A stretch of DNA of 32,000 bases. Source: Wallemia ichthyophaga EXF-994 (lineage: Eukaryota > Fungi > Basidiomycota). The stretch is from NCBI RefSeq assembly GCF_000400465.1, contig NW_008806281.1, positions 240,001-272,000 on the forward strand, given 5' to 3'. Positions 186 to 32,000 of the stretch are shown here, piece after piece. The translations under genes were made by a program, and so were the position numbers. Position 1 is the stretch's first letter. Every line of letters starts with the position of its first letter. A model generated the notes under the pieces. The model was not told the DNA's origin, made no database searches, and saw only the letters and a program-made list of their open reading frames with translations.

Positions 186-3100
186 ATGAATGATTGTGGG
201 TAATTTAAAGTCTAGAGCACTAACCAATCTAACGCTCAATCTCAGCTGATGTAAATCATCAAGTTTCTATCCTGAAAGCTCTACGTAGACGATCACTATC
301 GCAAGGCCAGCGTACTGCAATTGATCCTGATCTACCACCGACCAAACAAGAAATTCAAAATGATAAAGCTTTGAATCAATATGTGAGTCGTGTTTATCTT
401 GATATTGAGTACCTCTCTTAGCCCCTTTTCCTAGTGGGTCCCTGCTTCTGCTCACCCAGAGACTACCACCCATCCAAATGAATTCAATCATTACGTTTCC
501 AATCACTCTCCTACACCATCAAACTCAGGCTCTCTTAGCAGGATTAGATCCTCCAGCTCTCATGGCTCTTCACTCTCCCGTAGAAAGTCAAAGCTATCAA
601 GACAATACACTCCAACTGAGGATGACGGCGTTGGCGATAATGATTTCATATCCCCATCCTCCTCCAAGCCAAGTTCTCTTAATTTGGTTCGTTTTCATCT
701 CCTAATGACGCGTAAACACTTACACATTCCAGCTCCAATCTCTCACAGAAGAGACTTCAAATGAAATGTCTCAATCAAATGATGAGAATTATCATGTTAA
801 AAATGATAATTATACTTCTAAACCCAAAAAACTCAAAAATGGCTCAAGAGTTGCGGTACCGTCATATCAAATTGATTCCGAAATTTTCTCATCGGACCAT
901 AGACCACCACCACGCCTCGACTTGTCCTTCAACCATAGCCTTCTTGATCATCCTATCAAGGATGATAGACCTCTATCCACTCTCACGAATGATATCTTTG
1001 ACGCCTATGCTATGGGTAATGAACGTGGCTCATTCAGTTCTGTCTCTTCTGCTATTTCTTCAGAGAATACTCACCCTTTCGAACACGACTTACGACTTGA
1101 CCAATCTCATTCTCACGATAGTTATACTCACGATAATCAGATTCACGACACTCAATTACACACCGAAGATGATGATGCCCAGACCATTCATGGCTCTCCA
1201 AATCAAAACAAGCAAGATACTCTCAAGATTGTCAATACCAATGTTTCACCTTCAAAGAGTTCTCTGAATACTCCAAACACTCTCAGGAACAACTCTATAT
1301 CCTCCACTGAAGACACAAACGAGTCTAATGAATCCACATCAGAAGAGATATCAGAGTCAGTTGAAACGGGTGAAAGTTACGAAACGATATCCAGTGAACA
1401 CGTTGACAATGCCTACATGGTAACAAAGTCTTTGAAAAACAGGGTTCAACCACCGACACCAATACCAAGCGAAATACCCCCACCAACTTCAAATCCAATG
1501 AAGATGTCGATGGATCTCTCAGTAGGCTCGCTTATACCGGAATTTCCCGCACAGACTAGACATACCAATATCAATAATATCAATACTAACATAAAAAAGA
1601 TTGATAGTGTGAACAGCTTTCCAAATGTTGACCAAATGCTATTCGAACCTTCGAGACCTGCTCCTGAACCTCCAACTCCAATAATCTTTTCTGATCTTCC
1701 TTCTCGGAACAACCCATCTCCTACACCTTCAACTGGCTCGTCTACCTCAAAGAAGAAGGGATGGAATTGGCTCAAAGAGAAGGAAAGAGCTAGGAATGAA
1801 CGTGCACTGAAAATGAAAGAACTCAAAGATGCCAAAGTTAGAGAAAAGCTTGAGTTAAAGGAGAAGGAGAAGCGTGAACGAGAAGAACGTCTAGCACGTG
1901 AGAAGGAGAAACGTCGTGAGATGGAAGAGAAAGAAAAGGCTAAAGCTAAATCTAAGAGTGACATGAAAGTGCGCGAGCGTGAAAAAAGAGATAAAGAGAA
2001 AAAGGAGCGTGAGTTGAAGAAGGAGAATGACTTAAAGGTCGCTCGCGAGGAAAAAGAGAAGAAGGAGCGTGAGGAGAAAGAGAAAAAAGACCGAGAAGAA
2101 AAAGAGCGGAAGGAGCGGGAACTTCAGAAGAAAGAGCGCGAAGAAAACGAAAAGAGGGAGCGTGAATCTGCCAAGAAGGAGCGTGAAGATCGTGAAAAGA
2201 ACGAGCGCGAGGAGAAAGAAGCCAAAATGAAAGAAGAGCGCGAAGCCAAGGAAGCCAAACTCAAAAGCGATCGTGAGGAAAAGGAATCTAAAGCTAGAGA
2301 GGCGCGCGAGGCTGAGGAGAGTAAACTTCAACGCGATCGTCAAGAACAAGAAGCTCGAGAAGCCGAATCTGAAGCCAAAGCCAAGGCTGAAAGAGAGGAT
2401 AGAGAAATCCAGATGAAAGCTGAGCGCGAGGAGATGGAACAACGAAAAATGAAGGAGCGCGAAGAAGAGCAAAGTAAGCTCAAAAAAGAACTGGAAGAGT
2501 TGGAGGAAAAGCTCAAGAAGGAGCAAGAAGAGAAGGAGGAAGAGGAGAGACTCATGAAGGAACGTTTAGAGCAAGAGGAGATTATAAAGAAGGAGCGTGA
2601 AGCTGAAGCCAAACTCAGACAAGAACTTGAAGAGCAAGAAAATGCTCTGAAGAGAGAGATCGAAGAGAGAGAACAGCGTGAGGAAGAACTTCACCGACAG
2701 CTTGAAGAAGAGGGGCAGCTCGAGAGAGAGCGTGAAGAAGAGCAGCTTCAAAAAGAACGTGAAGAGGCTGAACTCGAACTCCAAAGAGAGCGTGAGAAGG
2801 AGGAGCGTCTTAAAGAGCTTGCAGAAGCTGAGCTTGATAATCAGAGAGAGCTTGAAGAGAAGCAGCTTCAGAAAGAACTCGCTGATGCTGAGATCGAGCT
2901 CCAGAAAGCACGTGAGGAGGAAGAAGAAAATGCAAAAAAGGAGCGCGATGAGACCAAGAAAGTGGAGAGTGATAAACAGAAGAAAGAGTCCGAAAAGAAG
3001 CCCAAAGAGAAAAGACTTAAACCATCCTTCAAGCTTAAGAAATCTGATTCCGCAGCGTCATCTAAGTCAAGCAAAGAGGCAGCAAAGCAGGCAACCAAGG

Positions 3101-5839
3101 CCAAAGAGCAGGAGCGCGCTCGGGACAAGGAAGCGGCCAAGGAACGCAAAGAGGCAGCAAAGATTGCCGCAGCTCAGTCACGTGAAGCTGCTAAGAATAC
3201 TCAATCATCTCATATAGGATTCGTTGGCACTTTGTTCGGATCAAAGAAGAAGAGCAGCAGCAGTCTGAAGTCTAATTCTACTAAATCCTCAACAAGTGAT
3301 CAGCCAAAAGAGAAAAAGAAGAAAGACAAGGGTAAGAAGGAGAAGAAAGCCAATGATTCGGAACAAAAGCCTCAAGCACCGGCTAACATGTTTGACTATC
3401 GCTATCCTATCCAAATCGAACGTGCTATTTACAGATTGTGAGTCAGATATTAAATGTAAGGAAATGCTAACGAATAGCGCCTCAGGAGTCACCTCAAGCT
3501 CGCTAATCCACGCCGGTCACTTTACGAGCAAGTATTAATTAGCAACTTCATGTTCTGGTATTTATCAATAGTGAATCACCAGAATCAGAGGCAGGTTGAA
3601 GCTAGACACAGACAAGATGACCAGATTGAGGTGCACAGACAGGAGGAGTTTGTCGAGAATGCGGACCAAAACAGCTTTGTAAATTACGAAGCTTCGAGTG
3701 TGTTGACATCTTCACCTACACCTCAAAACTCGCCGACGCATCCATCCGTACCGGACTCACCTCCAACTCCAGCTTTGTCAGGCGAAATTCCCCTTCCTCA
3801 CGAGGAGCATGGAGAGGAATCTGAAGAGAAACATCCTTTGGCTCTCAATGAAGGTAGCGAGGAAGATTTAACGGAGGAGACACTGTCATCACTTACGAGT
3901 GATATAATACAAGAAATAGAAATTGGTGAGCCAGTTTTACCTGCTCAAGCAACCATGAAGGGACCGGAACGAGCTACAACTACTGCAAAAGCACCATCGC
4001 CATCACCTTCTCCACCTGAGATTCTACCTGAAGATGTACAAGAAGTTATCGCACCACCTGAATCGGTGTCTTCAGGTTCACCTTCACCCCCGATGGCACT
4101 TGATTCACCTATTGAGCTGGAAGAGGCGCGTATGTCACCATTAGCATCGTTTGAAGATCAGATCCAAAGACCAAGTGATCCACCAGTCGAGCGTCAAGAA
4201 GAGATGCAAAAGGAGCAGAAGCAAAAGCAAAAGCAGAGGGAGTCAGTAATAGCTGAGCCTCCTGTATCTTTACCTGTAATGACACAACCAGCGCGTCCAG
4301 AGACACCTCCTCAGCAACCACCTTCACCAGTTACAATACCAGCATCACCAGCTCAGCCACACCATGCACCAGCTCAACCATCGCGACCACCATCAACTGC
4401 ACGACAATTATTGAATATTGTGACACAGCAGCCTTCAAGATCACCATCACCGGGACCATCACCCTCATCTGTACCTGCACCCGTTTCATCACCTGTAGCC
4501 TCACCGGGACCATCACCACTTACGCAGAACAATCAACAGAGAAGCGCATCTCCAACACCAAAGAGAAACAGACTTACAAAGATGGTAAGCACAGGTAGCT
4601 TTAGAGGGGAGATTGGTATGAAGCAACCATCGTACGAAGATCCGTACAAAATGTTGGATAAGCCGAAGCAATCGCCGCATTCATTGACGTACTCTTCGCC
4701 AACGCAGTCGCAGTCACAGACAGTGATGCAACCATCTTCACCTAGACAGCAGTTTCCAGGAATGATACAGCAACCATCACCTAGACAGCAGTCTCCAGGT
4801 ATAATACATCAACCATCTTCACCTAGACAGCAATCTCCAGGTATGTTGCAGTTACCATCACCAAGGCAGCAGTCTCCAGGTATGATGCATCAACCTGCAA
4901 GACAACAGTCGCCAGTAATGATGTACCAACATCCAAGACAACAGTCGCCAGTAATGATGCACCAACCTCCACGACAACAATCACCAGTTATGATGCATCA
5001 ACCTCCAATACAACAATCATCATACATATTACAACAACCACCAAGACAACAAGGGTCACCGATAATGCGTACACCATCGCCTGCCCAAATGCAAGAATAC
5101 CAACAAGCGCAATTCGAACAACAACAAGCACCTGGAGGATCACAAATGTACGGACCATCACCATCACCACCACCAGTGCCATCACATTCACCTAGTCCAA
5201 TGCAACAAACGCAACAACAGAATCAAGGATTTGGGATGCATGGATGGGGAGTGTATCAACAGAATTCGCAGCATCATCAGCAATTAATGAAACAGCAGGC
5301 GTATATGCATCAACAGCAAGTACAACAACAGCAACAACAACAGGAGTTGCAGCAGCAAAGGTATATAAATGCGATGGCTATACAGGAAGTACGTCGTGGG
5401 TCGTGGTCGCCTGGGTCACAGATGCAACAACAACAACAGCAGTACCAACAACAACAACAGTACCAACAGCAGCATTATAGTGTGAGTGTGGAATTGGTGT
5501 GTAGTAGAAGAAAGCTAACTGAATTTGAAACAGCAGCAGCAGCCACCACCACCACAACAACCACAACATCAACATTACCAACAGCAACAACCACACCAAA
5601 ACTCACAAGACTCACAGCAACGTTCACATAAATCCAAGTACTTACCATCGCGTTCAAGTTCAGCTTCAAATGTACCAACGCAGAATAATGTTGGACGTCG
5701 ACCAAGTTTACCACATCTACAAACGTTGGGAGTAGATGAGAGAATAACGGCAAGTTCAGCACCTAGTTCACCGGCATCAACGGGGTTTGTAATTGAAGAC
5801 GCCCCGACTTTACCAGCGATGACATATGAGAATTTGTAA
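186..5839 (+). CDS. ZDS1: Zds1-like protein (Zds_C domain; PP2A-Cdc55 regulator family), ~1801 aa, 6 exons
   Basis: Manual splicing gives exons 186-195, 246-382, 435-686, 733-3437, 3486-5481, 5534-5839 (5406 nt, in frame). The intron at 3438-3485 joins RYPIQIERAIYRL to SHLKLANPRRSLYEQVLISNFMFWYL, the Zds_C motif. Upstream exons missing from the ORF track give LRRRS...IDPDLP, WVPASAHPE and LSRRKSKLSRQY, which resemble Zds-family N-terminal blocks. The true start may lie further upstream because the spliced frame stays open to the window edge. Confidence 0.85.
1780..3180 (+). repeat. Low-complexity E/K/R-rich coding region (single-alpha-helix/coiled-coil-like) inside the Zds1-like gene
   Basis: About 450 codons of REEKEKKEREE-type sequence with almost no Pro or Gly in the core; it also produces the long F/L/S-rich antisense shadow ORFs. 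Confidence 0.85.
4729..5070 (+). repeat. Coding minisatellite, ~9 imperfect copies of 33-42 bp encoding (Q)P(S)xPRQQSP(G/V)MMH
   Basis: Units read directly: QPSSPRQQFPGMIQ, QPSPRQQSPGIIH, QPSSPRQQSPGMLQ, LPSPRQQSPGMMH, QPARQQSPVMMY, QHPRQQSPVMMH, QPPRQQSPVMMH, QPPIQQSSYILQ, QPPRQQGSPIMR. Confidence 0.9.
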
Positions 5840-7418: not shown

Positions 7419-7494
7419 GTACCTTCTCTTGTGCTTTGTCAAATCATGATTCTGCGTAAAGTGCATCGCAGATATCGCATTTTTAAGGCTTCTC
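7419..7494 (-). pseudogene. Decayed C2H2 zinc-finger remnant
   Basis: Minus strand reads EKP-[TAA]-KCDICDA-[frameshift]-FTQNHDLTKHKRR-Y, matching EKP(Y/F)xCx2Cx3Fx5Lx2Hx3H with a stop at the aromatic position, a 2-nt loss before F and the last His replaced by Tyr (TAC). Confidence 0.7.
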
Positions 7495-10531: not shown

Positions 10532-12005
10532 TTAATCTTTAAGCTCCTTCTTCATGATAGCCTCCATAGCATCAAAGTCTGAAGTATCCACCTTGATTAT
10601 TTCCTTCTTAAGGGTTTCCTCAATAGAATTCATAACTTTCCAGGATTCCTTATCATGAATGAAATTGACAGCAAGTCCCTTCCTACCGAATCTACCAGTT
10701 CTACCAATTCTATGTAAATATGTCTCGCTATCAGGTTTTCCTGACGCAGTCTTTGGCATATCGTAATTAATCACCATGTTTACTTGACTAATATCGATAC
10801 CTCTAGCAATAACGTTTGTGGTGATGAGAACTTTAGTTTTACCATCTCTGAAAGAATCAATGGTTAGATCTCTCTCGCTAGATTCCTGTTTACCGTGGAG
10901 TGAGACAACGGTGTGTCCTTCAGCAGTCATACGATGAGCGATTTCGTCAGCTGTATCTCTACGATGAACGAAAATGATGGACTGTCCGACAGTCATGAGC
11001 TCGTATAATTCGACCAAGACTTTAAATTTATGTTCCAAGTTATCACAATCCATGTAGAATTGCTTTATTCCTTCTACAGAGAGTTCTTCTTGTTTAAGTC
11101 TGATTTCATTAGCTGCAGGTGCGAATTTAGCAGCAAAATTTCTAACGATATCGGGGAATGTAGCGGAGAAGAGAAGAATTTGAGGTTTGGAAGTGATGAG
11201 GTTTTTAGCTTTAATGGATTGGTCACCCATAGAATGTTGGTCTAACATGTTATCAGCCTCATCCAAGACAAAAACCTTGACTTCTTTTGCGTTTATTTGA
11301 CCTTTACGTACAGCGTCAACGAGGGCGCCTGGGGTTGCCACAATAACTTGAGCGTCTACTTTAGACCCTTTAGGGATAGCATCCTTTATAGCGAAAGCAG
11401 TTTTTACGTTTGTGAATTGACCCATTTGTTGAATAACCGACATTGTTTGTCTGGCGAGTTCTCTAGAAGGGGAGAGAACAACAGCTTGGGGATTTGAGGA
11501 ATCATAATTTATACGTGATAGGATAGCTAAAGCGAAGGCAGCAGTTTTCCCCGTACCTGATTGAGATTGTGCAATCATGTTGCGAGGTGGATTTTGGAGG
11601 AGGAGTGGAAGGGCTCTTTCTTGAATTTTGGATGGTTTTTGAAATTTCATGGCGTAGATACCTTTTAAGAGGTTTTCGTGGCTGTAAGTGTGTGTTTAAG
11701 GGGGAGTTGTGCTAGCTCAACAGACACACTCACAGTCCGAGCTCTTCGAAAGTGCTAGCAGAGTATAAGGGAGAATTTGGATCAGCTTGTTGATCAGCGA
11801 GAGTGACGGAGACTTCTAGTTCTTGTTTTGGTTGCTGTGGTTGCTGTGGTTGGTCTCCTTGTTCCGCCTTCTCTCCTTGATCCGCCTGCTCCGCCTTCTC
11901 GGTAGACAAACCACCAATTCTATCTGCTAGGCTTGTAACGTTATCCTGCTGCTCAGGGTTGTTATTAGATTCAGTTATCCAGCCTTGCTCGTCGTCTTGT
12001 GGCAT
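10532..12005 (-). CDS. DBP5: DEAD-box RNA helicase Dbp5 (mRNA export)
   Basis: FQKPSKIQERALPLLL, AQSQSGTGKT, DEAD, SAT, HRIGRTGRFG and the Dbp5-specific EGIKQFYMDC. One intron (11682-11733) joins the 11730-12005 and 10532-11650 ORFs. Confidence 0.96.
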
Positions 12006-16882: not shown

Positions 16883-17683
16883 ATGGCTGACCGTGGTAAG
16901 TACAAGGGAATTTATAGGCGCCAACACAGCTCACATATTATAGGCAGAGGATTCGGTAGAGGCAGAGGTCGTGGACCACGCCGTGGCAGACAAACCAAAG
17001 ACGAGAGCAAGGAGTGGGTTCCAGTAACCAAGCTTGGCCGTCTTGTGAAGGCAGGCAAGGTCAAGTCAATGGAGGAGATCTACTTGTTCTCAATTCCTGT
17101 CAAGGAGTACCAAATTGTCGACTTCTTCTTGCCAAAGCTCAAGGATGAAGTTATGAAGATTTCTCCAGTTCAGAAGCAAACTAGAGCTGGTCAACGTACA
17201 CGCTTCAAGGCTTTCGTTGCAATTGGTGACTCTGATGGCCACGTTGGTCTCGGTGTCAAGTGCGCAAAGGAAGTTGCAACCGCTATCCGTGGTGCAATGA
17301 TCGCAGCAAAGCTTGCGACTATTCCAGTCAGACGTGGCTACTGGGGTAACGCTCTTGCTGAACCACACACAGTCCCTTGCAAGGTTTCTGGTAAGTGTGG
17401 TTCCGTCATGGCTAGGTTGGTTCCTGCTCCAAGAGGTACCGGTATCGTCGCTGCTCCTGCTTCAAAGAGGATGTTGCAATTAGCTGGTATTCAAGACTGT
17501 TACACTCAAACCAAGGGTAACACTTCAACCATGGGTAACTTTATCAAGGCCACCTTCCAAGCTATCTCTGGTACTTACGCTTTCCTCACTCCAAACCTCT
17601 GGCGTGATATTGCTCCACCACAGCATCCATTTGAAGAGCACTCAGCTCACCTTCAACTCGCACAAAAGCGTTCAGCTTACTAA
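16883..17683 (+). CDS. RPS2: 40S ribosomal protein uS5 (S2), 250 aa after removing a 48-nt intron
   Basis: RGG-rich N-tail, [41 protein letters not shown]. Intron 16896-16943 (GTAAGT...TAG) is in frame and has no stop. Confidence 0.97.
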
Positions 17684-20387: not shown

Positions 20388-21292
20388 ATGTCTAGTATCG
20401 GCACTGGATATGATTTATCTGCATCCACGTATTCCCCAGATGGCAGAATATTCCAAGTCGGTCGCCTCTTACGCCAGAAACAGCACACGCTGACGTTTGC
20501 ATGCATTTTAGATTGAATACGCAAACAAGGCTGTGGAGAATGCTGGGTGGGTATAGATTGGCTTATGTACGCTATCTCACTCCTTCCAGCACTGTAATTG
20601 GGATTAGAACTAAAGACGGCGTCATCCTCGCTGCACAGAAGCTGTTAGATTCCAAATTGCTCGTTTCTGGCACAGCCAAGCGTATACTGACTGCTGATAT
20701 GCATATCGGTATGGTAAGTGTGGTTTCCTGTTCACGATTCCCTCTTCTCAACTCGCTCCACTCCCAGGCCTCTGCCGGTTTGCGTGCGGATGGAAAGCAC
20801 CTTCAGACAAGGGCGAGAGAGGAGTGCAAGAACTACCGCGACAACTACATGTCGCCTATCCCCCTCAAACACCTCTCTGACAGACTCGGCTCGTATCTCA
20901 ACGCGTACACGCTGTACTCCTCCGTGAGGCCATTCGGGATATCCACAGTCATCTCGTCGTGCGACAAGAACGGTCCACAGCTCTACGCTATTGAGCCATC
21001 TGGTCTCTACTGGGGATACCAAGCTACTGCTATCGGTAAAGGCAAGCAACTCGCTCAGACGGAACTCGAGAAACTTAATTTCGACGAGCTGTCAATGCGT
21101 CAGGCTGTGTTTGAAGCAGCTAGAATTATTCACCTCGTTCATGACCCTACTAAGGACAAGGGATTCGAGTTGGAGATTAGCTGGATCGGTAAAGACTCGC
21201 AGTATAAACACGTTCACGTGCCTGCGCAACTGTATGACGAGGCTAACGAGTTGGGTAAGACACAGGCTGAGTCTGGACGTATGCAGGAGTGA
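20388..21292 (+). CDS. PRE10: 20S proteasome subunit alpha 7
   Basis: [62 protein letters not shown]; three introns. Confidence 0.95.
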
Positions 21293-23032: not shown

Positions 23033-23922
23033 TCACTGTACACTAAATAAGGCACCACTTGGTCTACTCACCCAACGATAGGTGAGCAATGACTGCGGAG
23101 TTTCATCGACGACAACCTGCGAAGACTCGCGATCCTCCTCATCTTTATCCTCCTCCTTCTTTCCTCGACGTTTAGAAGCGGTTTTGGTGAGCAATCTGTT
23201 GATAGTCTCCACCTTCTCATTCTCTAGACGCTGATCAGATTGGTGTTTACGCCTGCGCAGCAACTCAGCCTTTTTCAACGCCTGTTCTTCTTCTGTGAGC
23301 GTAGTCTTATGCTGTCTGCCTATATCAAGTGACATGAGCTCTGGTGTGTCGCTGGTGCCGTCGTCATTGGGTTGTTTGAGTGCAGCACGCTGTCTCGCAG
23401 TGAGACGTTGTTCATCTTTATCATTGTCTTTCCGCGTGTCTGCGTCATCGAGGTCATCCAACTCATCTTGATCGAGGTCATCCTCACCTTCACCCTCACC
23501 CTCACCACTGCTTATCTCGTCAATTTCCTCCTCACGCGATTTTTCGCGCGGTTTCTGCTGAGTTGCACGGGCGGAAGTGCGGGCAGAAGAGCGTGCACCG
23601 CGTGGTCTAGCAGCAGCACTCGAGTTGGATTTCTTATTAGTGGAACCAGGTGGGCGACCTCTGCGAGCCTTTGGCTTGGAGGTTTGAGACGGTGTGTCGT
23701 CGTCGTCGTTGTCGTCGTTGTCGTCATCCTCGTCGTCGTCGTTGTGTATATCGTCGTCATCGTCGACCATGTCCACATCATCTTGAGAATAATCCTCCAT
23801 GTTATCGTGTCCATCCTCCGAGGCTAACTCGTCTACCTCATCATCCTCACTCTCGACGATGGCTTGTAATAAATTTAATTTAATTTCCAGTTAAAATCCA
23901 ACTAAGACGCACTCTTTGGCAT
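23033..23922 (-). CDS. IES2: INO80 complex subunit Ies2 (PAPA-1 domain)
   Basis: Acidic N-terminus, then LTEEEQALKKAELLRRRKHQSDQRLENEKVETINRLL and a C-terminal YRWVS. Proposed start ATG 23922 with a short first exon (MPK) and a GTGCGT intron; alternative start at 23800. Confidence 0.8.
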
Positions 23923-23943: not shown

Positions 23944-25697
23944 TTATTTTACCTGTTGGCTGTTGGATTCAAACCTCCCAAGCGTCACCTCCTCCCAGAT
24001 TTCTCTGCAGTTGACGACTGATCCGAGTCTTGAACAAAGAAGAAAAGCCCCCGAAAGCTTCCGATTGAGGCTGTAAGTTTCCTTAGGCGGTGGTGTAAGA
24101 CGATGTTGGAGCATGATCGGTATCTGTGCCTTGACGCGTTCCGTGATGGTTTGATTCAAGAAGCTGTAAGGTTCTGCCTGTCTGAACGGCTCACCCAGAG
24201 CCAACATGGATGCGATATGTGCGTTGATCATTTCCTCGCTCTCGTCGCCCGTCAGATATCCCAACTGCAGCGAAGTCCTCACGCACTCCTCTCTATCGCC
24301 ATTCCCTGCTGCCAGTAACAAACGTCCAAACGCACCGACGAAATCCTCCGTATACGCTCTTGACGCGCCGAAGTCGATAAGGTTAATCCTTCCACACTCC
24401 CCATCCCACAGGAAGTTACTCCAGTTAGGATCTGTCTGCATCAGTCTGAATTGGAATATTTCGCTAATGCAAAGGCGCATAATGGCTGATCCAATCTGTG
24501 TGGCGGGTGAGCAGTGTACACAGCACACTCGCTATACCTTTCACCCACCTTGTCTTTCGTTGGCTGGTCGTATGTGTACGCCCTCGACAGCGACTCTCCC
24601 GGCATGAATTGTGTGGTGAGTATGTTGGGTGTGCACAAGTCTTTTACCACCACGGGGCAGCTGAAGACGGGGTCATTATGCAGATACTCCCCAAACCGCT
24701 CTCCACATTCAGCTTCGCGGAGGTAGTCGCATTCATCAGCCAGCTCAGTGCGCATCTGACGAATAGTGTTATCGAGGAACAATCCACGCGGGAGGATGCC
24801 GCTGGCCGCGACGAGCAGTTTAAGGTTGTTCAGATCCGAGCTAATGCTCTCTTTAACGCCTGGGAACTGGATTTTGAGGGCGACGTGCATGCGTGGGTGT
24901 GTGGGGTGGTGTGCGCTGAGTGTCGCCGTGTGCACCTGCCCAATACTCGCAGCAGCCACAGGCACCTTGTCGAAATGCTCGAAATGGCTGATCCAGTCAG
25001 CACCGTACTCGGCGGCGAGCACTCTCTCTAGCTGCCAGTTGGGCATGTAGTCGGCCTTATTCTGTAGCCGCGTCAACGCCGTTTCTATCTCGGGTGGCAG
25101 CAGGTGGCTGTCCTGGATCGAGAGGAATTGTCCGAGTTTGAGGGCTGCGCCGCGCATTACTGACAGCTTGGCCACTAGTCGGTCGACGTTGGCTGGGGAG
25201 AGCAAGGCGGAATGTTGGGTATTGCCGCCGCGGAGTACTTGACTCGCTGTGCCGTACGTAAGCCCCGCTGCTAAGCCTCCGTAGTGGAATAGCCTGCCTA
25301 AGCGCGAAGACGGTACCTTTGTGTAGCGTGGAGAGTGTGAGGGTGGTTGAGAGGGTGGCACTGCGAGAGGCTGTGTGGGTGTATGCGATATCCCCGATGT
25401 CTCGTGTATGCCGTGCGGCTGTAAAGTAGTTTGAGACATTGTGGTGGATGGCTGTGAGTCTGGTTGTTTGGGAGAATGAGTTCTTGAGAGTGATTGGCTG
25501 GGATTGCTAGAATGATTTCGATCCATGTGTGCATTCTGTGTGTCACTGCCACTGCCACCACCACCACCACCACCACCACCACTATCGCGTGCGTAAGCAT
25601 ATAAATCCTCCAAAGACTCAAATTGCTGTGTATTTCGTGGCAAAGGGGTATAAATCCGCTTCAAAGAGTTCAAAATTTTAAAATAATTGGAAAGCAT
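23944..25697 (-). CDS. COQ8: ABC1/UbiB atypical kinase Coq8
   Basis: VPSSRLGRLFHYGGL, RGAALKLGQFLS, AAASIGQVH, VALKIQFPGV, MQTDPNWSNF and LIDFGA. One intron near 24495-24550. First ATG is 25697 (the ORF-track start at 25721 is TTG). Confidence 0.95.
25544..25583 (-). repeat. (GGT)n microsatellite encoding poly-Gly in the Coq8 N-terminal region
   Basis: About nine CCA units on the + strand, translated as DSGGGGGGGGGSGS. Confidence 0.9.
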
Positions 25698-25723
25698 GTC
25701 GTGGTGGTTCCGAGTAGACAACC

Positions 25724-27790: not shown

Positions 27791-28618
27791 ATGACCGGTC
27801 GATTGAAATTTAAAAAAAGCAGCAACCAATCGGATTCCGAGATTTTTGACAAGACGAAAGAGAAGTTCAAGAGGCGGTGCACGCGCATAAGTCCTCCGCG
27901 GTATGCATATCTCGACGAGCCTATTAGTCCGCCGAGAAAGACACGCAGACGGCGTTGGAATGGCGATGATGCTGACGCAGAAGAGGAAGAATTCAACGCC
28001 AAGTTATACGATGTCGGTGGTGAGGATGGTGCGTTTGAAGCATACGTACCTCCACCATGGCGAGGTGGGGAATCTTATACCAGCTATTTGGATACATTTT
28101 CAAACGACAGCGACGACGACGAGAGATATGCGGAGAATATAAGGCAGAAAATGTGGGAGAAATCTCACCCAGGAGAAGCACAGCATGCGCGTGAGTTTGC
28201 AAAGATGAAATCAGATCGAAGGAATATTACGAGTCGAGCGAAATACGCAGCTCGCGATGAAATACACAGCGAGCAGGCAGAACAAGCTGCTAAACAGATC
28301 AATGAGGCAGAGAAGCAAGCAGAAGCCAAACGACAGTCATTCAGGTCATTCTGGCTGAATACTCCGGGTAAAATCACCTCAAGCAATATCAAATACCCCT
28401 CATTCGATGGTTGCATTAGCGAGAGCAGCGTCAGTAGCTTCTTGCAACTCTCTCATTTACGCGCATCCGATAAGAAACGCGTGGTGAGAGACGTTATGCG
28501 CATTTTCCACCCAGACAAGTTCGTGCGATATGAAAGTCAAATCCCAACGCAGGAATACGATTCGATTAAGGAGAAAGTGTCCATGATAGCAAGGATACTG
28601 ATACATCTGCTTGAATAA
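27791..28618 (+). CDS. Conserved-type hypothetical protein with a C-terminal J-like HPDKF motif (NFKBIL1-like C-terminus), intronless
   Basis: 275 aa from ATG 27791: basic N-terminus, acidic middle, helical region, then KRVVRDVMRIFHPDKF. The family call is from motif resemblance only. Confidence 0.7.
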   Translation: MTGRLKFKKSSNQSDSEIFDKTKEKFKRRCTRISPPRYAYLDEPISPPRKTRRRRWNGDDADAEEEEFNAKLYDVGGEDGAFEAYVPPPWRGGESYTSYLDTFSNDSDDDERYAENIRQKMWEKSHPGEAQHAREFAKMKSDRRNITSRAKYAARDEIHSEQAEQAAKQINEAEKQAEAKRQSFRSFWLNTPGKITSSNIKYPSFDGCISESSVSSFLQLSHLRASDKKRVVRDVMRIFHPDKFVRYESQIPTQEYDSIKEKVSMIARILIHLLE

Positions 28619-28624
28619 ATTGCT

Positions 28625-29201
28625 TCAGTTCTTGTTCTTGTAGTTTTTGTAGATAATCCCAGCATTCAGGTACGTCGCGTATCCCAACCACGCGCAGTAA
28701 GGGAGGTAAAGATAGAAAGCATTCGTGTCAATCCCTCTGAGATCATTTGTAGTCTTCAGCACTGTCCCAAGAAGTGCGGCAATATCTAATAAAGCGAGCA
28801 CAGGCTTTTTGGCACCGAAAAATAGTGGTGTCCAGAGCATATTCATTCCAAACTGCGCGTATTGAAGGTGCAAGCTATCTCTAGCTGCGTCACCGATGAA
28901 TGGCGTGTTGACATGCGACGCTGTCAAGTGAGCCGCATATCCCATTGCACCGTACAACAGAGTCCACACGATTGGGAAGGCTATTCTGGGTGGCTGGCCT
29001 GGTGGTTTAGCCAGAGCTGCATACCATGTGTTAACAGAGGACTTGGTTATAGCCCCGCTTAAACCACCCAAAGCTATCGGCAATCCAACGGCAATTGCCG
29101 GGTTACGAGGTATTTCATAGAGCTATTTGGTTTCTTAGCCGTGGTTCCAGCGTACAACTCACAGCTCAACTCACAAGCGATGACGATAGCAATTCGATCA
29201 T
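28625..29201 (-). CDS. TspO/MBR (translocator protein) family membrane protein
   Basis: First exon MIELLSSSL (ATG 29201), an intron, then LYEIPRNPAIAVGLP, WYAALAKPPGQPPRIAFPIVWTLLYGAMGYA, NMLWTPLFFG and LPYCAWLGYATYLN. Confidence 0.92.
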
Positions 29202-29341
29202 GGTCGTTGGAGGTAGAGACGCGTTTCGAATCAATCTTGGACATGAGTGTATTTCCCTTCATCAGCCTGCACTTCTGACTCAAGATTTGCTTTTAGATCA
29301 ATCCATCCATTTTCTCGATGACGTCTTGATTGTAAACTAGA

Positions 29342-30052
29342 ATGGCAGTACCGAATACGCGTGAATAAATCCATTAACACGGTACAAAACCCTCTAACTC
29401 TTGCGCAGCCGATAAGAAACCGCTCAATGACCTCCTCGCACGCGTCCAAGCGCTCGATTCTGCGAACAAGGAGAGGTGGGCAGTGTGGCTGTGTGTTATC
29501 CACCAATCTAACCCTGATTAGCTCAAAGAGGAAGCGAGAGGAGAGGGATGACAAGGTTAACAAGAGGGTGAATGGGCTCGACGTTGTGCGTTGTGCGTTA
29601 TAAATCCGTCTTCTCTGCTCACAAACGCGTAGGAAATGGGTGAAGAGAGTGAGAGAATAGCTCATGAGGGCGATAACCGTGATATACAAATATATCACGC
29701 TGCGCCTCCTAACTCCGCACATCCCGCTCACTCCTCTGTCTTCCGCGCTACACCGGCAAAATCTGGGCAGGCTGGGCAGTCTAAAACACCCCCAAATAAC
29801 CACAAAACACACACGCACACAGCGCGCACCACCCCCAAAACTACCCTCCCCAAGGAAGACGACGACGTCATCGTGATTGACAATCTCACACCAAAGAAGC
29901 AGTACACGCCAAACAGTGCAACTTCGAACAAATTCAGAGGCGGTAGGATATCGGAGGCGTACAAAATGACTCCGAGGAGGAAGATGACGCGTGAAATGCT
30001 TATGCCTGAGGAGAGCTTTGAGAAGGAGAATGAGAATGAGGATGCGTGGTGA
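29342..30052 (+). CDS. Small disordered TP-rich hypothetical protein (~183 aa, 4 exons)
   Basis: Exons 29342-29360, 29409-29475, 29522-29567 and 29633-30052 splice in frame with CTAAC/CTCAC branch sites: MAVPNTPDKKPLNDLLARVQALDSANKESSKRKREE...MTPRRKMTREML. No family recognised. Confidence 0.75.
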
Positions 30053-30276
30053 GTGTGGTGATCTGTACTGTTGTAATTCTATCGCAATTGATTATTTATA
30101 TTCTGTGCAATGATTTACAAGGCTTTAACACTTGAATACACCATAAGTTGTGCTTATCCCTGCGCGATAATCGATATTATGAAATGTGTTAGTTAGCAGG
30201 ATTATGATCAATTGATCTCATTTTTAATTTCCAGCTCACTTTTAGCGCGATTTCCTTTTTCGGCGACGGGCCTTAC

Positions 30277-30282
30277 TATAAA
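30277..30282 (+). promoter_or_regulatory. Candidate TATA box for the AA9-like gene
   Basis: TATAAA about 150 bp upstream of ATG 30428; position and sequence only. Confidence 0.4.
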
Positions 30283-30427
30283 GGCCGGACTTGTTTCGTT
30301 AATTATTTGTCAAGTCAAAGATCGCTGGACGTTCTAACCTCAATCAACTGGTATTGATTAAGACAGAGTCTCTGGGAGATAAAACCACAGCACAGCACAC
30401 ACACAGACACACACATACACACTCACA

Positions 30428-31501
30428 ATGCACTTCTCACAAGCCATCGCGACAGCACTACTTAGCGCAATGCCGGTCATTGCAGCGCCAGTGCCAACAC
30501 CAATGAGTATGTCATCAAAACAAAGCCAGATGGTATCGCCGGACCTGATACGAGCAGCGCAAGCAAGCGAGCCTGTAGCAATAAAGGATGTAAAGTCGCA
30601 CGACCTAACGTGTGGCAGGGGAGCGTCGGTGCAGCACCAAGACCACCCTGTCGCTATAGACGCAGGCACGCAGCTGCAGATGCAATGGAGCGACGACTGG
30701 AAGCACTCCATCGGACCTATAATGACATACCTCGCTGCGTGCGTCGACAACGACTGTGCTCAGTCCGACGTAACTACACTCGAATGGTTCAAGATCGACC
30801 AGAAGGCTGCCGATGCGAGTGGGGCTTGGTGGCAAAGCGAGTTGGATACGCAGCGCATATACGTGCCTATCCCTGCCGCCTTGCGTGAGGGCAATTACAT
30901 AGTGCGTCATGAAGTAATCGTGCTCGATCAGGACCCTGTGCTGTTCTTCCCGGCCTGCGCTGCGCTGAATGTGCGCAACCAGAACCAAGTTGAGGTTGAG
31001 GGCGTAGAGACTTACCCATCGTCAAACTTCACGGTGGAAATACCAGGTGCTTACGGTGAAGACGACGAGGGGTTGCAGAGCGTGGATGAGGCCTTTGACG
31101 CTCACAGTTACGTCTTCCCAGGTCCACCCGTCTGGCAGCCAGATGTGGATGGATTGGTAGAGAGCGCATCGAGCGATGGGTTCTACGAGGCGGCTGAAAT
31201 GGATGTAGAGATGGCTGGCGATGCTTATCAGGTGCAGTTTTTAGCGCCAAATATCACATCGAGCGTCGAGTTTGTCAGTAGCACCGCGACTACACTGATG
31301 CCTACGATGACAGTGGAAAGCGTGAGTAGCACGACAAGCAGCACTTCCACGGGTACAGCTACAGCTACACCATCCCCCACTCCTTACCACGCGCAACTAT
31401 CACCGCTCCCAACAGATATAAATCACGGTGAGAGCGGCGGTGAAGCGGAAGATGGGCCATCTTACGATGACGGTAGCTGGAATCCAACAAAGTATGACTA
31501 A
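30428..31501 (+). CDS. Secreted AA9 (GH61/LPMO)-fold protein lacking copper-binding residues, with an acidic and Ser/Thr-rich tail; intronless
   Basis: Signal peptide MHFSQAIATALLSAMPVIA; AA9 scaffold motifs DLTCG, W.HSIGPIMTYLAAC, WFKIDQ, IPAAL..GNYIVRHEVI, FFPACAAL and VEIPGAY. No His at the mature N-terminus. Confidence 0.88.
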   Translation: MHFSQAIATALLSAMPVIAAPVPTPMSMSSKQSQMVSPDLIRAAQASEPVAIKDVKSHDLTCGRGASVQHQDHPVAIDAGTQLQMQWSDDWKHSIGPIMTYLAACVDNDCAQSDVTTLEWFKIDQKAADASGAWWQSELDTQRIYVPIPAALREGNYIVRHEVIVLDQDPVLFFPACAALNVRNQNQVEVEGVETYPSSNFTVEIPGAYGEDDEGLQSVDEAFDAHSYVFPGPPVWQPDVDGLVESASSDGFYEAAEMDVEMAGDAYQVQFLAPNITSSVEFVSSTATTLMPTMTVESVSSTTSSTSTGTATATPSPTPYHAQLSPLPTDINHGESGGEAEDGPSYDDGSWNPTKYD

Positions 31502-31566: not shown

Positions 31567-32000
31567 ATGTCAATTCCATCCGTGTCACGAGCAGAGATAG
31601 TCCAGTGGATAAATGGGGTACTTGACAGCAATTATACCAAAGTAGAGCAGTGCGGAACCGGTGCGATTTACTGCCAGCTTCTCGATTCAATTTACCGTGC
31701 GTGGTGATGTGTTTGTGGGGAGTAGCGGGTTTAACGGGGATTTACAGAGAATGTGCCACTGGGGAGAGTCAAGTTTAATGCTCGCCAGGTGTGTTAAATG
31801 GGTTGGCAAACACCACAGCACTCACCAACATTCCCAGGAATACGAGTACATAAACAACTTCAAAATTCTGCAAACGGCGTTTAGAGTGAGTGTCTTGCTT
31901 TTCCTGCTTCTCTACTCACACAATTCTCGCCAGTCTAACAAGAGTGAGTTGCTTGTCTTGTCCACTTGACCACACGGTTAACCACAATCCAGTGTGAGTG
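31567..32000 (+). CDS. BIM1: Microtubule plus-end protein EB1/Bim1 (CH domain, partial; runs off the window)
   Basis: MSIPSVSRAEIVQWINGVLDSNYTKVEQCGTGAIYCQLLDSIY..VPLGRVKFNARQEYEYINNFKILQTAFRSNK; several introns and a 10-nt exon at 31934-31943. Confidence 0.93.

Follow-up and report, generated by a model that had tools for sequence, protein, structure and literature searches.

The DNA analysed here (the window) is the whole 32,000-nucleotide stretch from positions 240,001 to 272,000 of contig NW_008806281.1 of the basidiomycete Wallemia ichthyophaga EXF-994, and all coordinates below refer to it. Near its 3' end, on the plus strand, lies a single-exon gene (30428..31501; 357 codons and a stop) whose product belongs to family AA9 of the lytic polysaccharide monooxygenases (LPMOs), copper enzymes that cleave cellulose, but has lost most of the residues of the copper site. 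The open reading frame (ORF) encodes 357 amino acids (aa) with zero internal stops, and the protein is identical to one on record for W. ichthyophaga. Judged from its sequence, we regard it as shown that the gene is a functional AA9 derivative, predicted to be exported and unable to form the histidine brace. An initial annotation of the DNA had proposed a secreted or wall-located, non-catalytic protein on an AA9 scaffold; the analysis below agrees with most of its claims and departs from it over the fate of the substrate-binding face.

AA9 fold and copper-site residues

The protein matched Pfam family PF03443 (AA9/GH61) with 124.8 bits (gathering cutoff 27.8; E = 5.8e-36). The match ran from residue 38 to 217 on profile positions 21-195 of 207 and left the first 20 positions, His1 included, unmatched. 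By sequence, the closest solved structures were HiLPMO9B (5nns, E = 1.3e-25) and NcPMO-3 (4eis, 1.4e-18); LsAA9B (6rs6) scored 2.4e-12. An AlphaFold2 model built on 28 homologues contained the AA9 β-sandwich core (residues 38-237; 30539..31138, +). Between residues 51 and 240, most block means of the predicted local distance difference test (pLDDT) were about 90 or above, with dips to 73-85. Residues 1-44 and most of the tail fell below 50. A second model, of a distant orthologue described below, likewise had a confident core and low confidence in the N-terminus and the tail. In a Foldseek search of the PDB the model matched 5nns with E = 2e-16 and a target-normalised template modelling score (TM-score) of 0.69. 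The top 40 matches were all AA9 proteins (target-normalised TM-score about 0.65-0.70) and were followed by AA11 and AA10; the match to LsAA9B had E = 4e-12. All four scaffold cysteines (Cys62/Cys177, Cys105/Cys110) are kept, as are the core motifs GPIMTY, WFKID, RHE, PGAY and FPGP. By the sequence profile and by the β-sandwich with its two disulfides, the window protein is an AA9 homologue with the AA9 fold, from which two N-terminal strands are missing. The fold, the intact cysteines and core motifs, and the uninterrupted reading frame had all been described in the initial annotation.

Copper-site residues were mapped by alignment to canonical basidiomycete AA9s and to PDB 5nns and by hmmalign of 150 sequences, and their rarity was counted in the corresponding columns of the 146 nearest AA9 cluster representatives. 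Four of the five positions are substituted in the window protein. The predicted signal peptide cleavage (..VIA↓APVP..) falls in the same alignment column as that of canonical AA9s (..A↓HG..), and Ala20 (30485-30487, +) stands there in place of His1. The second-sphere His is replaced by Asp167 (30926..30928, +), which changes the usual RHEIIALH to RHEVIVLD and is followed by a four-residue deletion. The (Gln/Glu)-Phe-Tyr triplet reads Leu172-Phe173-Phe174 (30941..30949, +), in which both the second-sphere Gln/Glu (Leu172, 30941-30943, +) and the axial Tyr (Phe174 of LFFP, 30947-30949, +) are gone. The sole retained copper ligand is His93, the brace His2 of WKHSIGP (30704..30706, +). Among the 146 related representatives, His2 is His in 123, the second-sphere His is His in 107, the Gln/Glu position is Glu or Gln in 144, and the axial position is Tyr in 133. 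Taken over all five sites, HHH(E/Q)Y occurs most often.

Among the orthologues, Ala20 fills the His1 column in all five, and position 167 is Asp in all five (GAT or GAC). His2 is present in the window protein and three orthologues and is Phe in a distant orthologue (L003/P0005), which has the axial Tyr and carries Lys at the position of Leu172. Each of the five copper-site positions is therefore missing in at least one clade member. That each is dispensable somewhere in the clade, with Asp167 fixed, fits the absence of a selected metal site better than the presence of a new one.

AA9 function needs His1, as the H17A variant of CnCel1 from Cryptococcus neoformans fails to complement (PMC10166503), and the brace-less LsAA9B is described as devoid of any copper site in the part of PMC10354095 that cites Frandsen 2019. 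We infer that the window protein cannot hold copper in a histidine brace. Because the brace is the copper site, and in view of these two precedents, the loss of LPMO chemistry is well supported, and the earlier description of a non-catalytic protein with only His93 left of its copper site appears sound.

N-terminus and substrate face

Residues 1-19 (MHFSQAIATALLSAMPVIA; 30428..30484, +) form a predicted signal peptide with a 14-aa hydrophobic core (mean Kyte-Doolittle 2.04) and a cleavage site between VIA and AP that satisfies the -3/-1 rule. Secretion and a mature start at APVPT, both proposed at the outset, are thus supported by a plausible signal peptide and by the canonical cleavage column. 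The mature protein would begin (30485-30502) with consecutive X-Pro dipeptides, AP-VP-TP, and the orthologues with AP-VP, AP-LP-MP or AP-LP. Such runs are trimmed by dipeptidyl aminopeptidases of the DPP-IV/Ste13 type, which may shift the true N-terminus inwards by a few residues. No option gives a His: residues 20-57 are without one, and N-terminal trimming could therefore expose none.

Where His1 and strands β1-β2 should be, the alignments show a replacement segment (residues 20-37, APVPTPMSMSSKQSQMVS; 30485..30538, +). About 24 canonical residues after His1, which form strands one and two and the beginning of loop L2, have been swapped for an unrelated 18-aa segment rich in Pro, Ser and Gln, and the canonical pattern HG[FYW]V..[IV]T[IV].GK.Y.G is lost. 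The AlphaFold2 pLDDT of this segment is below 50. Four further residues are deleted right after Asp167. The strand replacement and the deletion are a larger change than the point substitutions, one that the initial annotation had missed. In LsAA9A, Glu148, Asp150 and Arg159, which contact the sugar, lie in the loop that follows the second-sphere His, and the methylated His1 stacks on the +1 sugar (PMC5651836). With the strands replaced and that loop four residues shorter, much of the canonical substrate face is remodelled and not just stripped of copper. The AA9 sandwich evidently tolerates the loss of its first strands.

Of the substrate-face features, only Tyr209 of the PGAY motif in the LC loop (31052..31054, +) is clearly kept. 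All clade members and 145 of the 146 related representatives have Tyr here, and the motif suggests that this residue is equivalent to the sugar-stacking Tyr of TaAA9A and LsAA9A (PMC10166503, PMC5651836). The proposal that the flat LPMO surface is reused is therefore doubtful: Tyr209 speaks for it, and the replaced strands and L2 start and the shortened loop speak against it.

C-terminal tail

The C-terminal extension (residues 238-357, about 121 aa; 31139..31498, +), delimited by composition and by the AlphaFold2 model, is the long acidic and Ser/Thr-rich tail noted at the outset. It has 19 Asp and Glu versus 1 Lys or Arg, an isoelectric point (pI) of 4.05, and 28% Ser and Thr. It has no Cys, and its last 20 residues are hydrophilic (mean Kyte-Doolittle -1.84), with no hydrophobic end of the glycosylphosphatidylinositol (GPI) type. 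Residues 242-266 and 275-344 have pLDDT values below 50 and are taken as disordered, which places the protein among AA9s with a disordered C-terminal region (dCTR).

Three islands in the tail are conserved. Island 1 (VESASSDGFYEAAEMDVEMAGDAYQVQFLAP; 31157..31249, +) was delimited by alignment, has the consensus VES.S...A(E/D).DV..G(D/E)AYQVQFLA, and includes the octapeptide AYQVQFLA, which is invariant in all five orthologues with synonymous differences at 7 of its 8 codons. Both AlphaFold2 models, that of the window protein and a second one of the distant orthologue, have a short β-strand at (Y)QVQFLA with pLDDT about 50-64, and they weakly suggest that this strand packs on the sandwich, possibly at the place of the lost N-terminal strand. 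Island 2 (VSSTATTLMP; 31274..31303, +), likewise from the alignment and with SSTATT invariant, is probably part of a stalk with putative O-glycosylation. Island 3 (YDDGSWNPTKYD; 31463..31498, +; pLDDT 56-59) was defined from the alignment and the codon table and fits the conserved motif DDG(S/T)WN..KYD.

The tail gave no Pfam match to a known domain. A profile search with it returned only another Wallemia fragment among the 8000 candidates listed, a weak negative, as the search was swamped by low-complexity sequence. The stretch GDAYQVQF bears no more than a loose resemblance to the PIR repeat, which we take as a lead only; the repeat itself (PF00399, core DGQ[IV]Q) was not matched by Pfam even at E up to 10.

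Orthologues and selection

In an exhaustive HMMER search over 1.84 billion cluster representatives, three clusters scored more than 500 bits, each of them of this type, after which scores dropped to 158 bits for ordinary His1-bearing AA9s. We conclude that the clade is confined to Wallemia-like fungi. The orthologue of W. mellicola (P0004/L001) has 62% identity by BLASTP local alignment and 67% in the multiple alignment with its corrected sequence. Two other Wallemia-type orthologues have 71-74% (P0002/L005) and 73-79% (P0003/L002), the BLASTP local values being the lower and the multiple-alignment values the higher. The distant orthologue is 44-48% identical and is known only from metagenomes and read assemblies; its eleven sequence variants are all of 361 aa. 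Its source (L003/L004, the P0005 cluster) is a deeply diverged Wallemia-like lineage with 34-37% guanine plus cytosine (GC) and contigs of up to 287 kb.

In the readable loci, the brace-less AA9 gene sits at one conserved position per contig. Contigs L001 and L002 carry counterparts of the window's ABC1 kinase gene, of the two genes that come next and of the upstream gene. A gene of the EB1 type lies 3' of the AA9 gene both here and in another strain of W. ichthyophaga. In that strain (L008, GCA_004918235.1) the ORF is intact and differs by three single-nucleotide polymorphisms (window 30998, 31239 and 31327). Two of the three are non-synonymous, one changing Glu to Gly in the clade-specific insertion QVEVEGVET and the other Ser to Gly in the tail. 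No canonical AA9 paralogue surfaced in Wallemia in the search for relatives, which was word-limited.

Selection was measured by Nei-Gojobori (NG86) comparisons of five coding sequences. Synonymous sites were saturated, with a proportion of synonymous differences (pS) of 0.69-0.90. In the core, comparisons between the four closer species gave a proportion of non-synonymous differences (pN) of 0.07-0.16, and those with the distant one gave 0.29-0.32. The ratio of the corresponding rates (dN/dS) was 0.04-0.08 where dS could be corrected. For the N-terminal segment of the four closer orthologues, pN was 0.05-0.15 against a pS of 0.40-0.84. Evolution is faster in the tail, where pN was 0.19-0.33 for the closer four, yet the three conserved islands persist there. 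The codon table shows synonymous variation at substituted copper-site positions, namely GCG, GCA and GCC at Ala20 and CTG, CTC and CTT at Leu172, and also at Phe174. Purifying selection thus acts on the core, on the N-terminal segment and on the three tail motifs. We rejected a pseudogene or relaxed selection on the low pN against saturated pS, the synonymous codon changes, the intact strain copy and the eleven variants of 361 aa. The dN/dS comparison with orthologues suggested in the initial annotation accordingly argues against a decaying gene, all five orthologues being intact.

Gene model and neighbouring genes

We searched for a hidden exon that would supply a canonical His1. A profile of the canonical N-terminus, run in six frames against window 28501-31000 (1.9 kb of upstream sequence and the first 570 bases of the gene), recovered only 15 residues that are already in the ORF. 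An alternative N-terminus starting with His, which the initial annotation had named as grounds for abandoning its reading, is thus not apparent in this region. An in-frame intron at 30507-30557 (GTATGT...CTGAT...CAG, 51 nt) was considered and rejected: the orthologues preserve the encoded residues through synonymous differences and do not have the GTATGT. Its excision would still yield no His.

Public gene models are unreliable at this locus. Three of them (P0030, 746 aa; P0177, 813 aa; and P0004 of W. mellicola, 556 aa) join the AA9-like gene to its neighbours over window ~29231-31501 and beyond. They take in the upstream 189-aa gene, which ends ...ENEDAW at 30052, and two also take in the EB1 gene; the signal peptide and the N-terminal segment are omitted. 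The UniRef name of one fusion is 'AA9 family lytic polysaccharide monooxygenase'. A stop that seemed to break the W. mellicola copy was rejected as such, for a 44-nt intron (GTGAGT...ATAG) lies there between ...LKDGK and YIVRHE (L001 ~7430-7480, GCA_004918075.1). This intron is absent from the window gene. The NCBI model of W. mellicola uses another donor, loses 13 residues (VYVPIPSTLKDGK) and is fused to the upstream gene.

The neighbouring genes are also on record for W. ichthyophaga (cluster mates TIB31324.1 and EOR01203.1), the upstream gene being EOR01203 / J056_004524. A candidate TATA box (TATAAAGG; 30277..30284, +), read directly from the sequence 144-151 nt 5' of the ATG, sits in the 375-bp AT-rich spacer 3' of the stop codon of the upstream gene (30052). 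CA-rich, imperfect microsatellite-like tracts (cacacacagacacacacatacacac...) occur at 30385-30427, directly abutting the AA9 start codon on its upstream side, and at 29800-29830 inside the upstream gene, where the tract encodes the His/Thr-rich KTHTHTART. Two antisense ORFs overlap the AA9 gene (30358-30750, -, 130 aa; 30605-30988, -, 127 aa) and are taken as chance ORFs. Downstream, 65 bp after the AA9 stop codon, begins a gene for a microtubule plus-end protein of the EB1/BIM1 type (31567-32000, +), which continues past the window end and is interrupted by several introns of ~50 nt (GTGCGT/GTGTGT/GTGAGT...CAG); its CH and EB1 domains are recognised by Pfam in the public fusion model.

From 766 to 28615, the genes of the window are ordinary housekeeping ones in a compact fungal genome. 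They include genes for a Zds_C protein (766-3438, +), a DEAD-box helicase (10532-11647, -), ribosomal protein uS5 (16883-17680, +), a proteasome subunit (20501-21289, +), a PAPA-1 domain protein (23033-23797, -) and the ABC1 kinase (24441-25718, -). Neither tRNA genes nor Rfam matches at gathering score were found in the rest of the window.

Discussion

The copper-site substitutions, the remodelled N-terminus and the strength of purifying selection make it very probable that this gene is a selected, non-oxidative AA9 derivative. The wider proposal, a secreted acidic pseudo-LPMO with a non-catalytic role in the extracellular space or the wall, is one that we favour slightly. Once its signal peptide is removed, the protein would be a strongly acidic AA9 β-sandwich of 338 aa without a copper centre. 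After export it would act as a non-catalytic extracellular or cell-wall-associated protein that does not oxidise polysaccharides. Its remodelled former substrate face, on the side of Tyr209, may together with the conserved tail motifs bind a wall polymer or a partner. The Ser/Thr stretch would be glycosylated and act as a spacer, and the invariant AYQVQFLA strand might dock back on the sandwich in the stead of the lost N-terminal strand. That the job of the protein is binding of glycan or of the cell wall in particular is a tentative suggestion from its sequence features, to which we give somewhat less than even weight.

A wall or extracellular role is suggested by the signal peptide, the Ser/Thr-rich spacer, the acidity, the Tyr of the LC loop, the precedent of CnCel1 and the part of the wall in salt adaptation. 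W. ichthyophaga is an obligately halophilic basidiomycete whose wall is given a central role in that adaptation and thickens three-fold at high salinity; its hydrophobins (proteins of the cell wall) have an unusually high share of acidic residues (PMC3849046). Several points weigh against this reading. The disappearance of part of the canonical substrate face, amounting to half of the former binding surface, weakens the idea of glycan binding. Acidity alone is no functional pointer, as some canonical AA9 cores are equally acidic (the core of P0008 has a pI of 4.3). The tail has no GPI signal and no Pfam match to a PIR repeat or a carbohydrate-binding module (CBM), which leaves attachment to the wall without a recognised sequence basis. 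The tail strand is modelled by AlphaFold2 with low confidence (pLDDT about 50-64). We also found no description of the gene in the Wallemia literature on AA9, GH61 and LPMOs, in which the supplements of Zajc 2013 were screened by the identifiers of the upstream neighbour only.

Could the protein still be a metallo- or redox protein? His93, Asp167 and nearby acidic residues might together form a new site that binds copper or another metal, for example in metal buffering, or supports other chemistry. Asp167 is invariant at the old site, His93 is kept in four of five orthologues, and copper-binding LPMO-like proteins without LPMO activity exist (Bim1/X325, PMC10166503). However, the N-terminal amine/His ligand is missing, the distant orthologue has Phe for His93 and is itself conserved, and Leu and Phe in place of the polar Gln and Tyr would make the pocket hydrophobic; nor is there the GPI-type C-terminus of X325 proteins. 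We consider such a site improbable. A gene-model artefact, in which a His start arises through another exon or through processing, or a decaying relic, is less credible still and can practically be set aside. The fused public models and the intron-like string at 30507-30557 might seem to invite it, but the canonical profile matched nothing further in the six frames of window 28501-31000, the five orthologues have the identical His-less N-terminal state, the string is conserved as amino acids without its GTATGT and yields no His when removed, and purifying selection is strong.

It is also conceivable, although we think it unlikely, that the AA9 core is an inert scaffold and that function resides in the N-terminal segment and the tail motifs, with no recognition of polysaccharides. 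Examples would be protein-protein interaction, cell-cell aggregation in the sarcina-like clumps, or retention of water and ions by an acidic glycosylated coat in brine. The tail islands and the motif PDLIRAAQ, all outside the old active site, are among the best-conserved short motifs, the canonical binding face is remodelled, and its high acidity is a trait that the protein shares with other exposed Wallemia proteins (PMC3849046). Against an inert core stand its constraint, the highest in the protein (pN 0.07-0.16, vs. 0.19-0.33 in the tail), the retention of the sugar-stacking Tyr of PGAY, and the lack of a known partner. The non-catalytic extracellular or wall-associated protein can also be carried one step further, to an LPMO scaffold rebuilt as a novel type of wall-architecture protein in the most halophilic fungus known. 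In such a protein, the copper face would be abolished and the N-terminal edge strand replaced by the AYQVQFLA strand, which would dock back or link to β-glucan through its Gln in the manner of PIR proteins. This version is speculative and quite unlikely; if true, the rebuilt scaffold would contribute to the thick, salt-responsive Wallemia cell wall.

The ancestor of the Wallemiomycetes is estimated by the authors of PMC3849046 to have split off about 250 million years ago, and these fungi have very few enzymes that degrade plant polysaccharides (PMC6319455). Strong constraint across a deeply diverged, enzyme-poor genus suggests that the gene is kept for something other than oxidative breakdown of biomass. 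The automated LPMO name given to a fused model overstates its activity, and counts of carbohydrate-active enzymes (CAZymes) that include this gene would credit Wallemia with an LPMO that it almost certainly lacks.

Comparison with known AA9 and LPMO-like proteins

With canonical AA9s (HiLPMO9B, 5nns; NcPMO-3, 4eis; TaAA9A, 2yet) the Wallemia protein shares the Pfam family, the fold, both disulfides and a homologous cleavage column, with about 30-35% identity in the core. Unlike them, it lacks His1, the axial Tyr, the second-sphere His and the Gln/Glu, has its first two strands replaced and four residues deleted, and carries a clade-specific tail.

Among AA9s that act on the cell's own wall, CnCel1 is a precedent. 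It has a long disordered C-terminal region and resides in the wall of a basidiomycete whose plant-degrading enzymes are few, and wall integrity and stress tolerance depend on it (PMC10166503). However, CnCel1 has a full brace and depends on its His1 (H17A fails), where the Wallemia protein is naturally Ala. The AA9s with an X282 'belt' (PMC10354095) and CoAA9A (PMC10990093) resemble the Wallemia protein in having a conserved short motif in, or at the end of, a Ser/Thr-rich extension. For the X282 belt, found in some Agaricomycete AA9s, the prediction is that aromatic residues hold it back against the AA9 core (PMC10354095), which makes it a published analogue for a conserved extension lying on the sandwich. 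The disordered tail of CoAA9A bears Cys (PMC10990093). These motifs are unrelated in sequence to the Wallemia tail, and the proteins keep a functional brace. Disulfide dimerisation of the CoAA9A type would be impossible for the Wallemia tail because it has no Cys.

The X325/Bim1 proteins likewise have an LPMO-like fold at the cell surface without LPMO activity. They are GPI-anchored and have a histidine brace that binds copper. The Wallemia protein has neither His1 nor a GPI-type end, its C-terminus being hydrophilic, and Pfam finds only AA9 in it.

Brace-less AA9s as a kind are already published, and we found no paper describing the Wallemia clade. The precedent is the Arg-AA9 LsAA9B of Lentinus similis (PDB 6rs6-6rs9), as far as PMC10354095 presents it. 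By sequence LsAA9B is not the nearest relative (2.4e-12, vs. 1.3e-25 for 5nns), and it has Arg at position 1, where the Wallemia protein has Ala. An Arg-AA9 has an N-terminal Arg on a complete AA9 fold; here the start is Ala-Pro and the β1-β2 region is replaced. Arg-AA9s, as Frandsen and colleagues are said to have reported in 2019, occur almost entirely in wood-decay Agaricomycetes. Three of the related representatives (P0068, P0135 and P0171) have Gln or Glu for His1 and further copper-site losses and look like independent brace-less lineages. They keep an intact β1-β2 segment, and the Wallemia clade is without it. The clade also stands apart from other brace-less AA9s in having a hydrophobic or basic residue where Gln/Glu is near-universal, in its own conserved tail, and in its position outside the Agaricomycetes. 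For the question of what brace-less AA9s do, the Wallemia clade offers a clean natural case.

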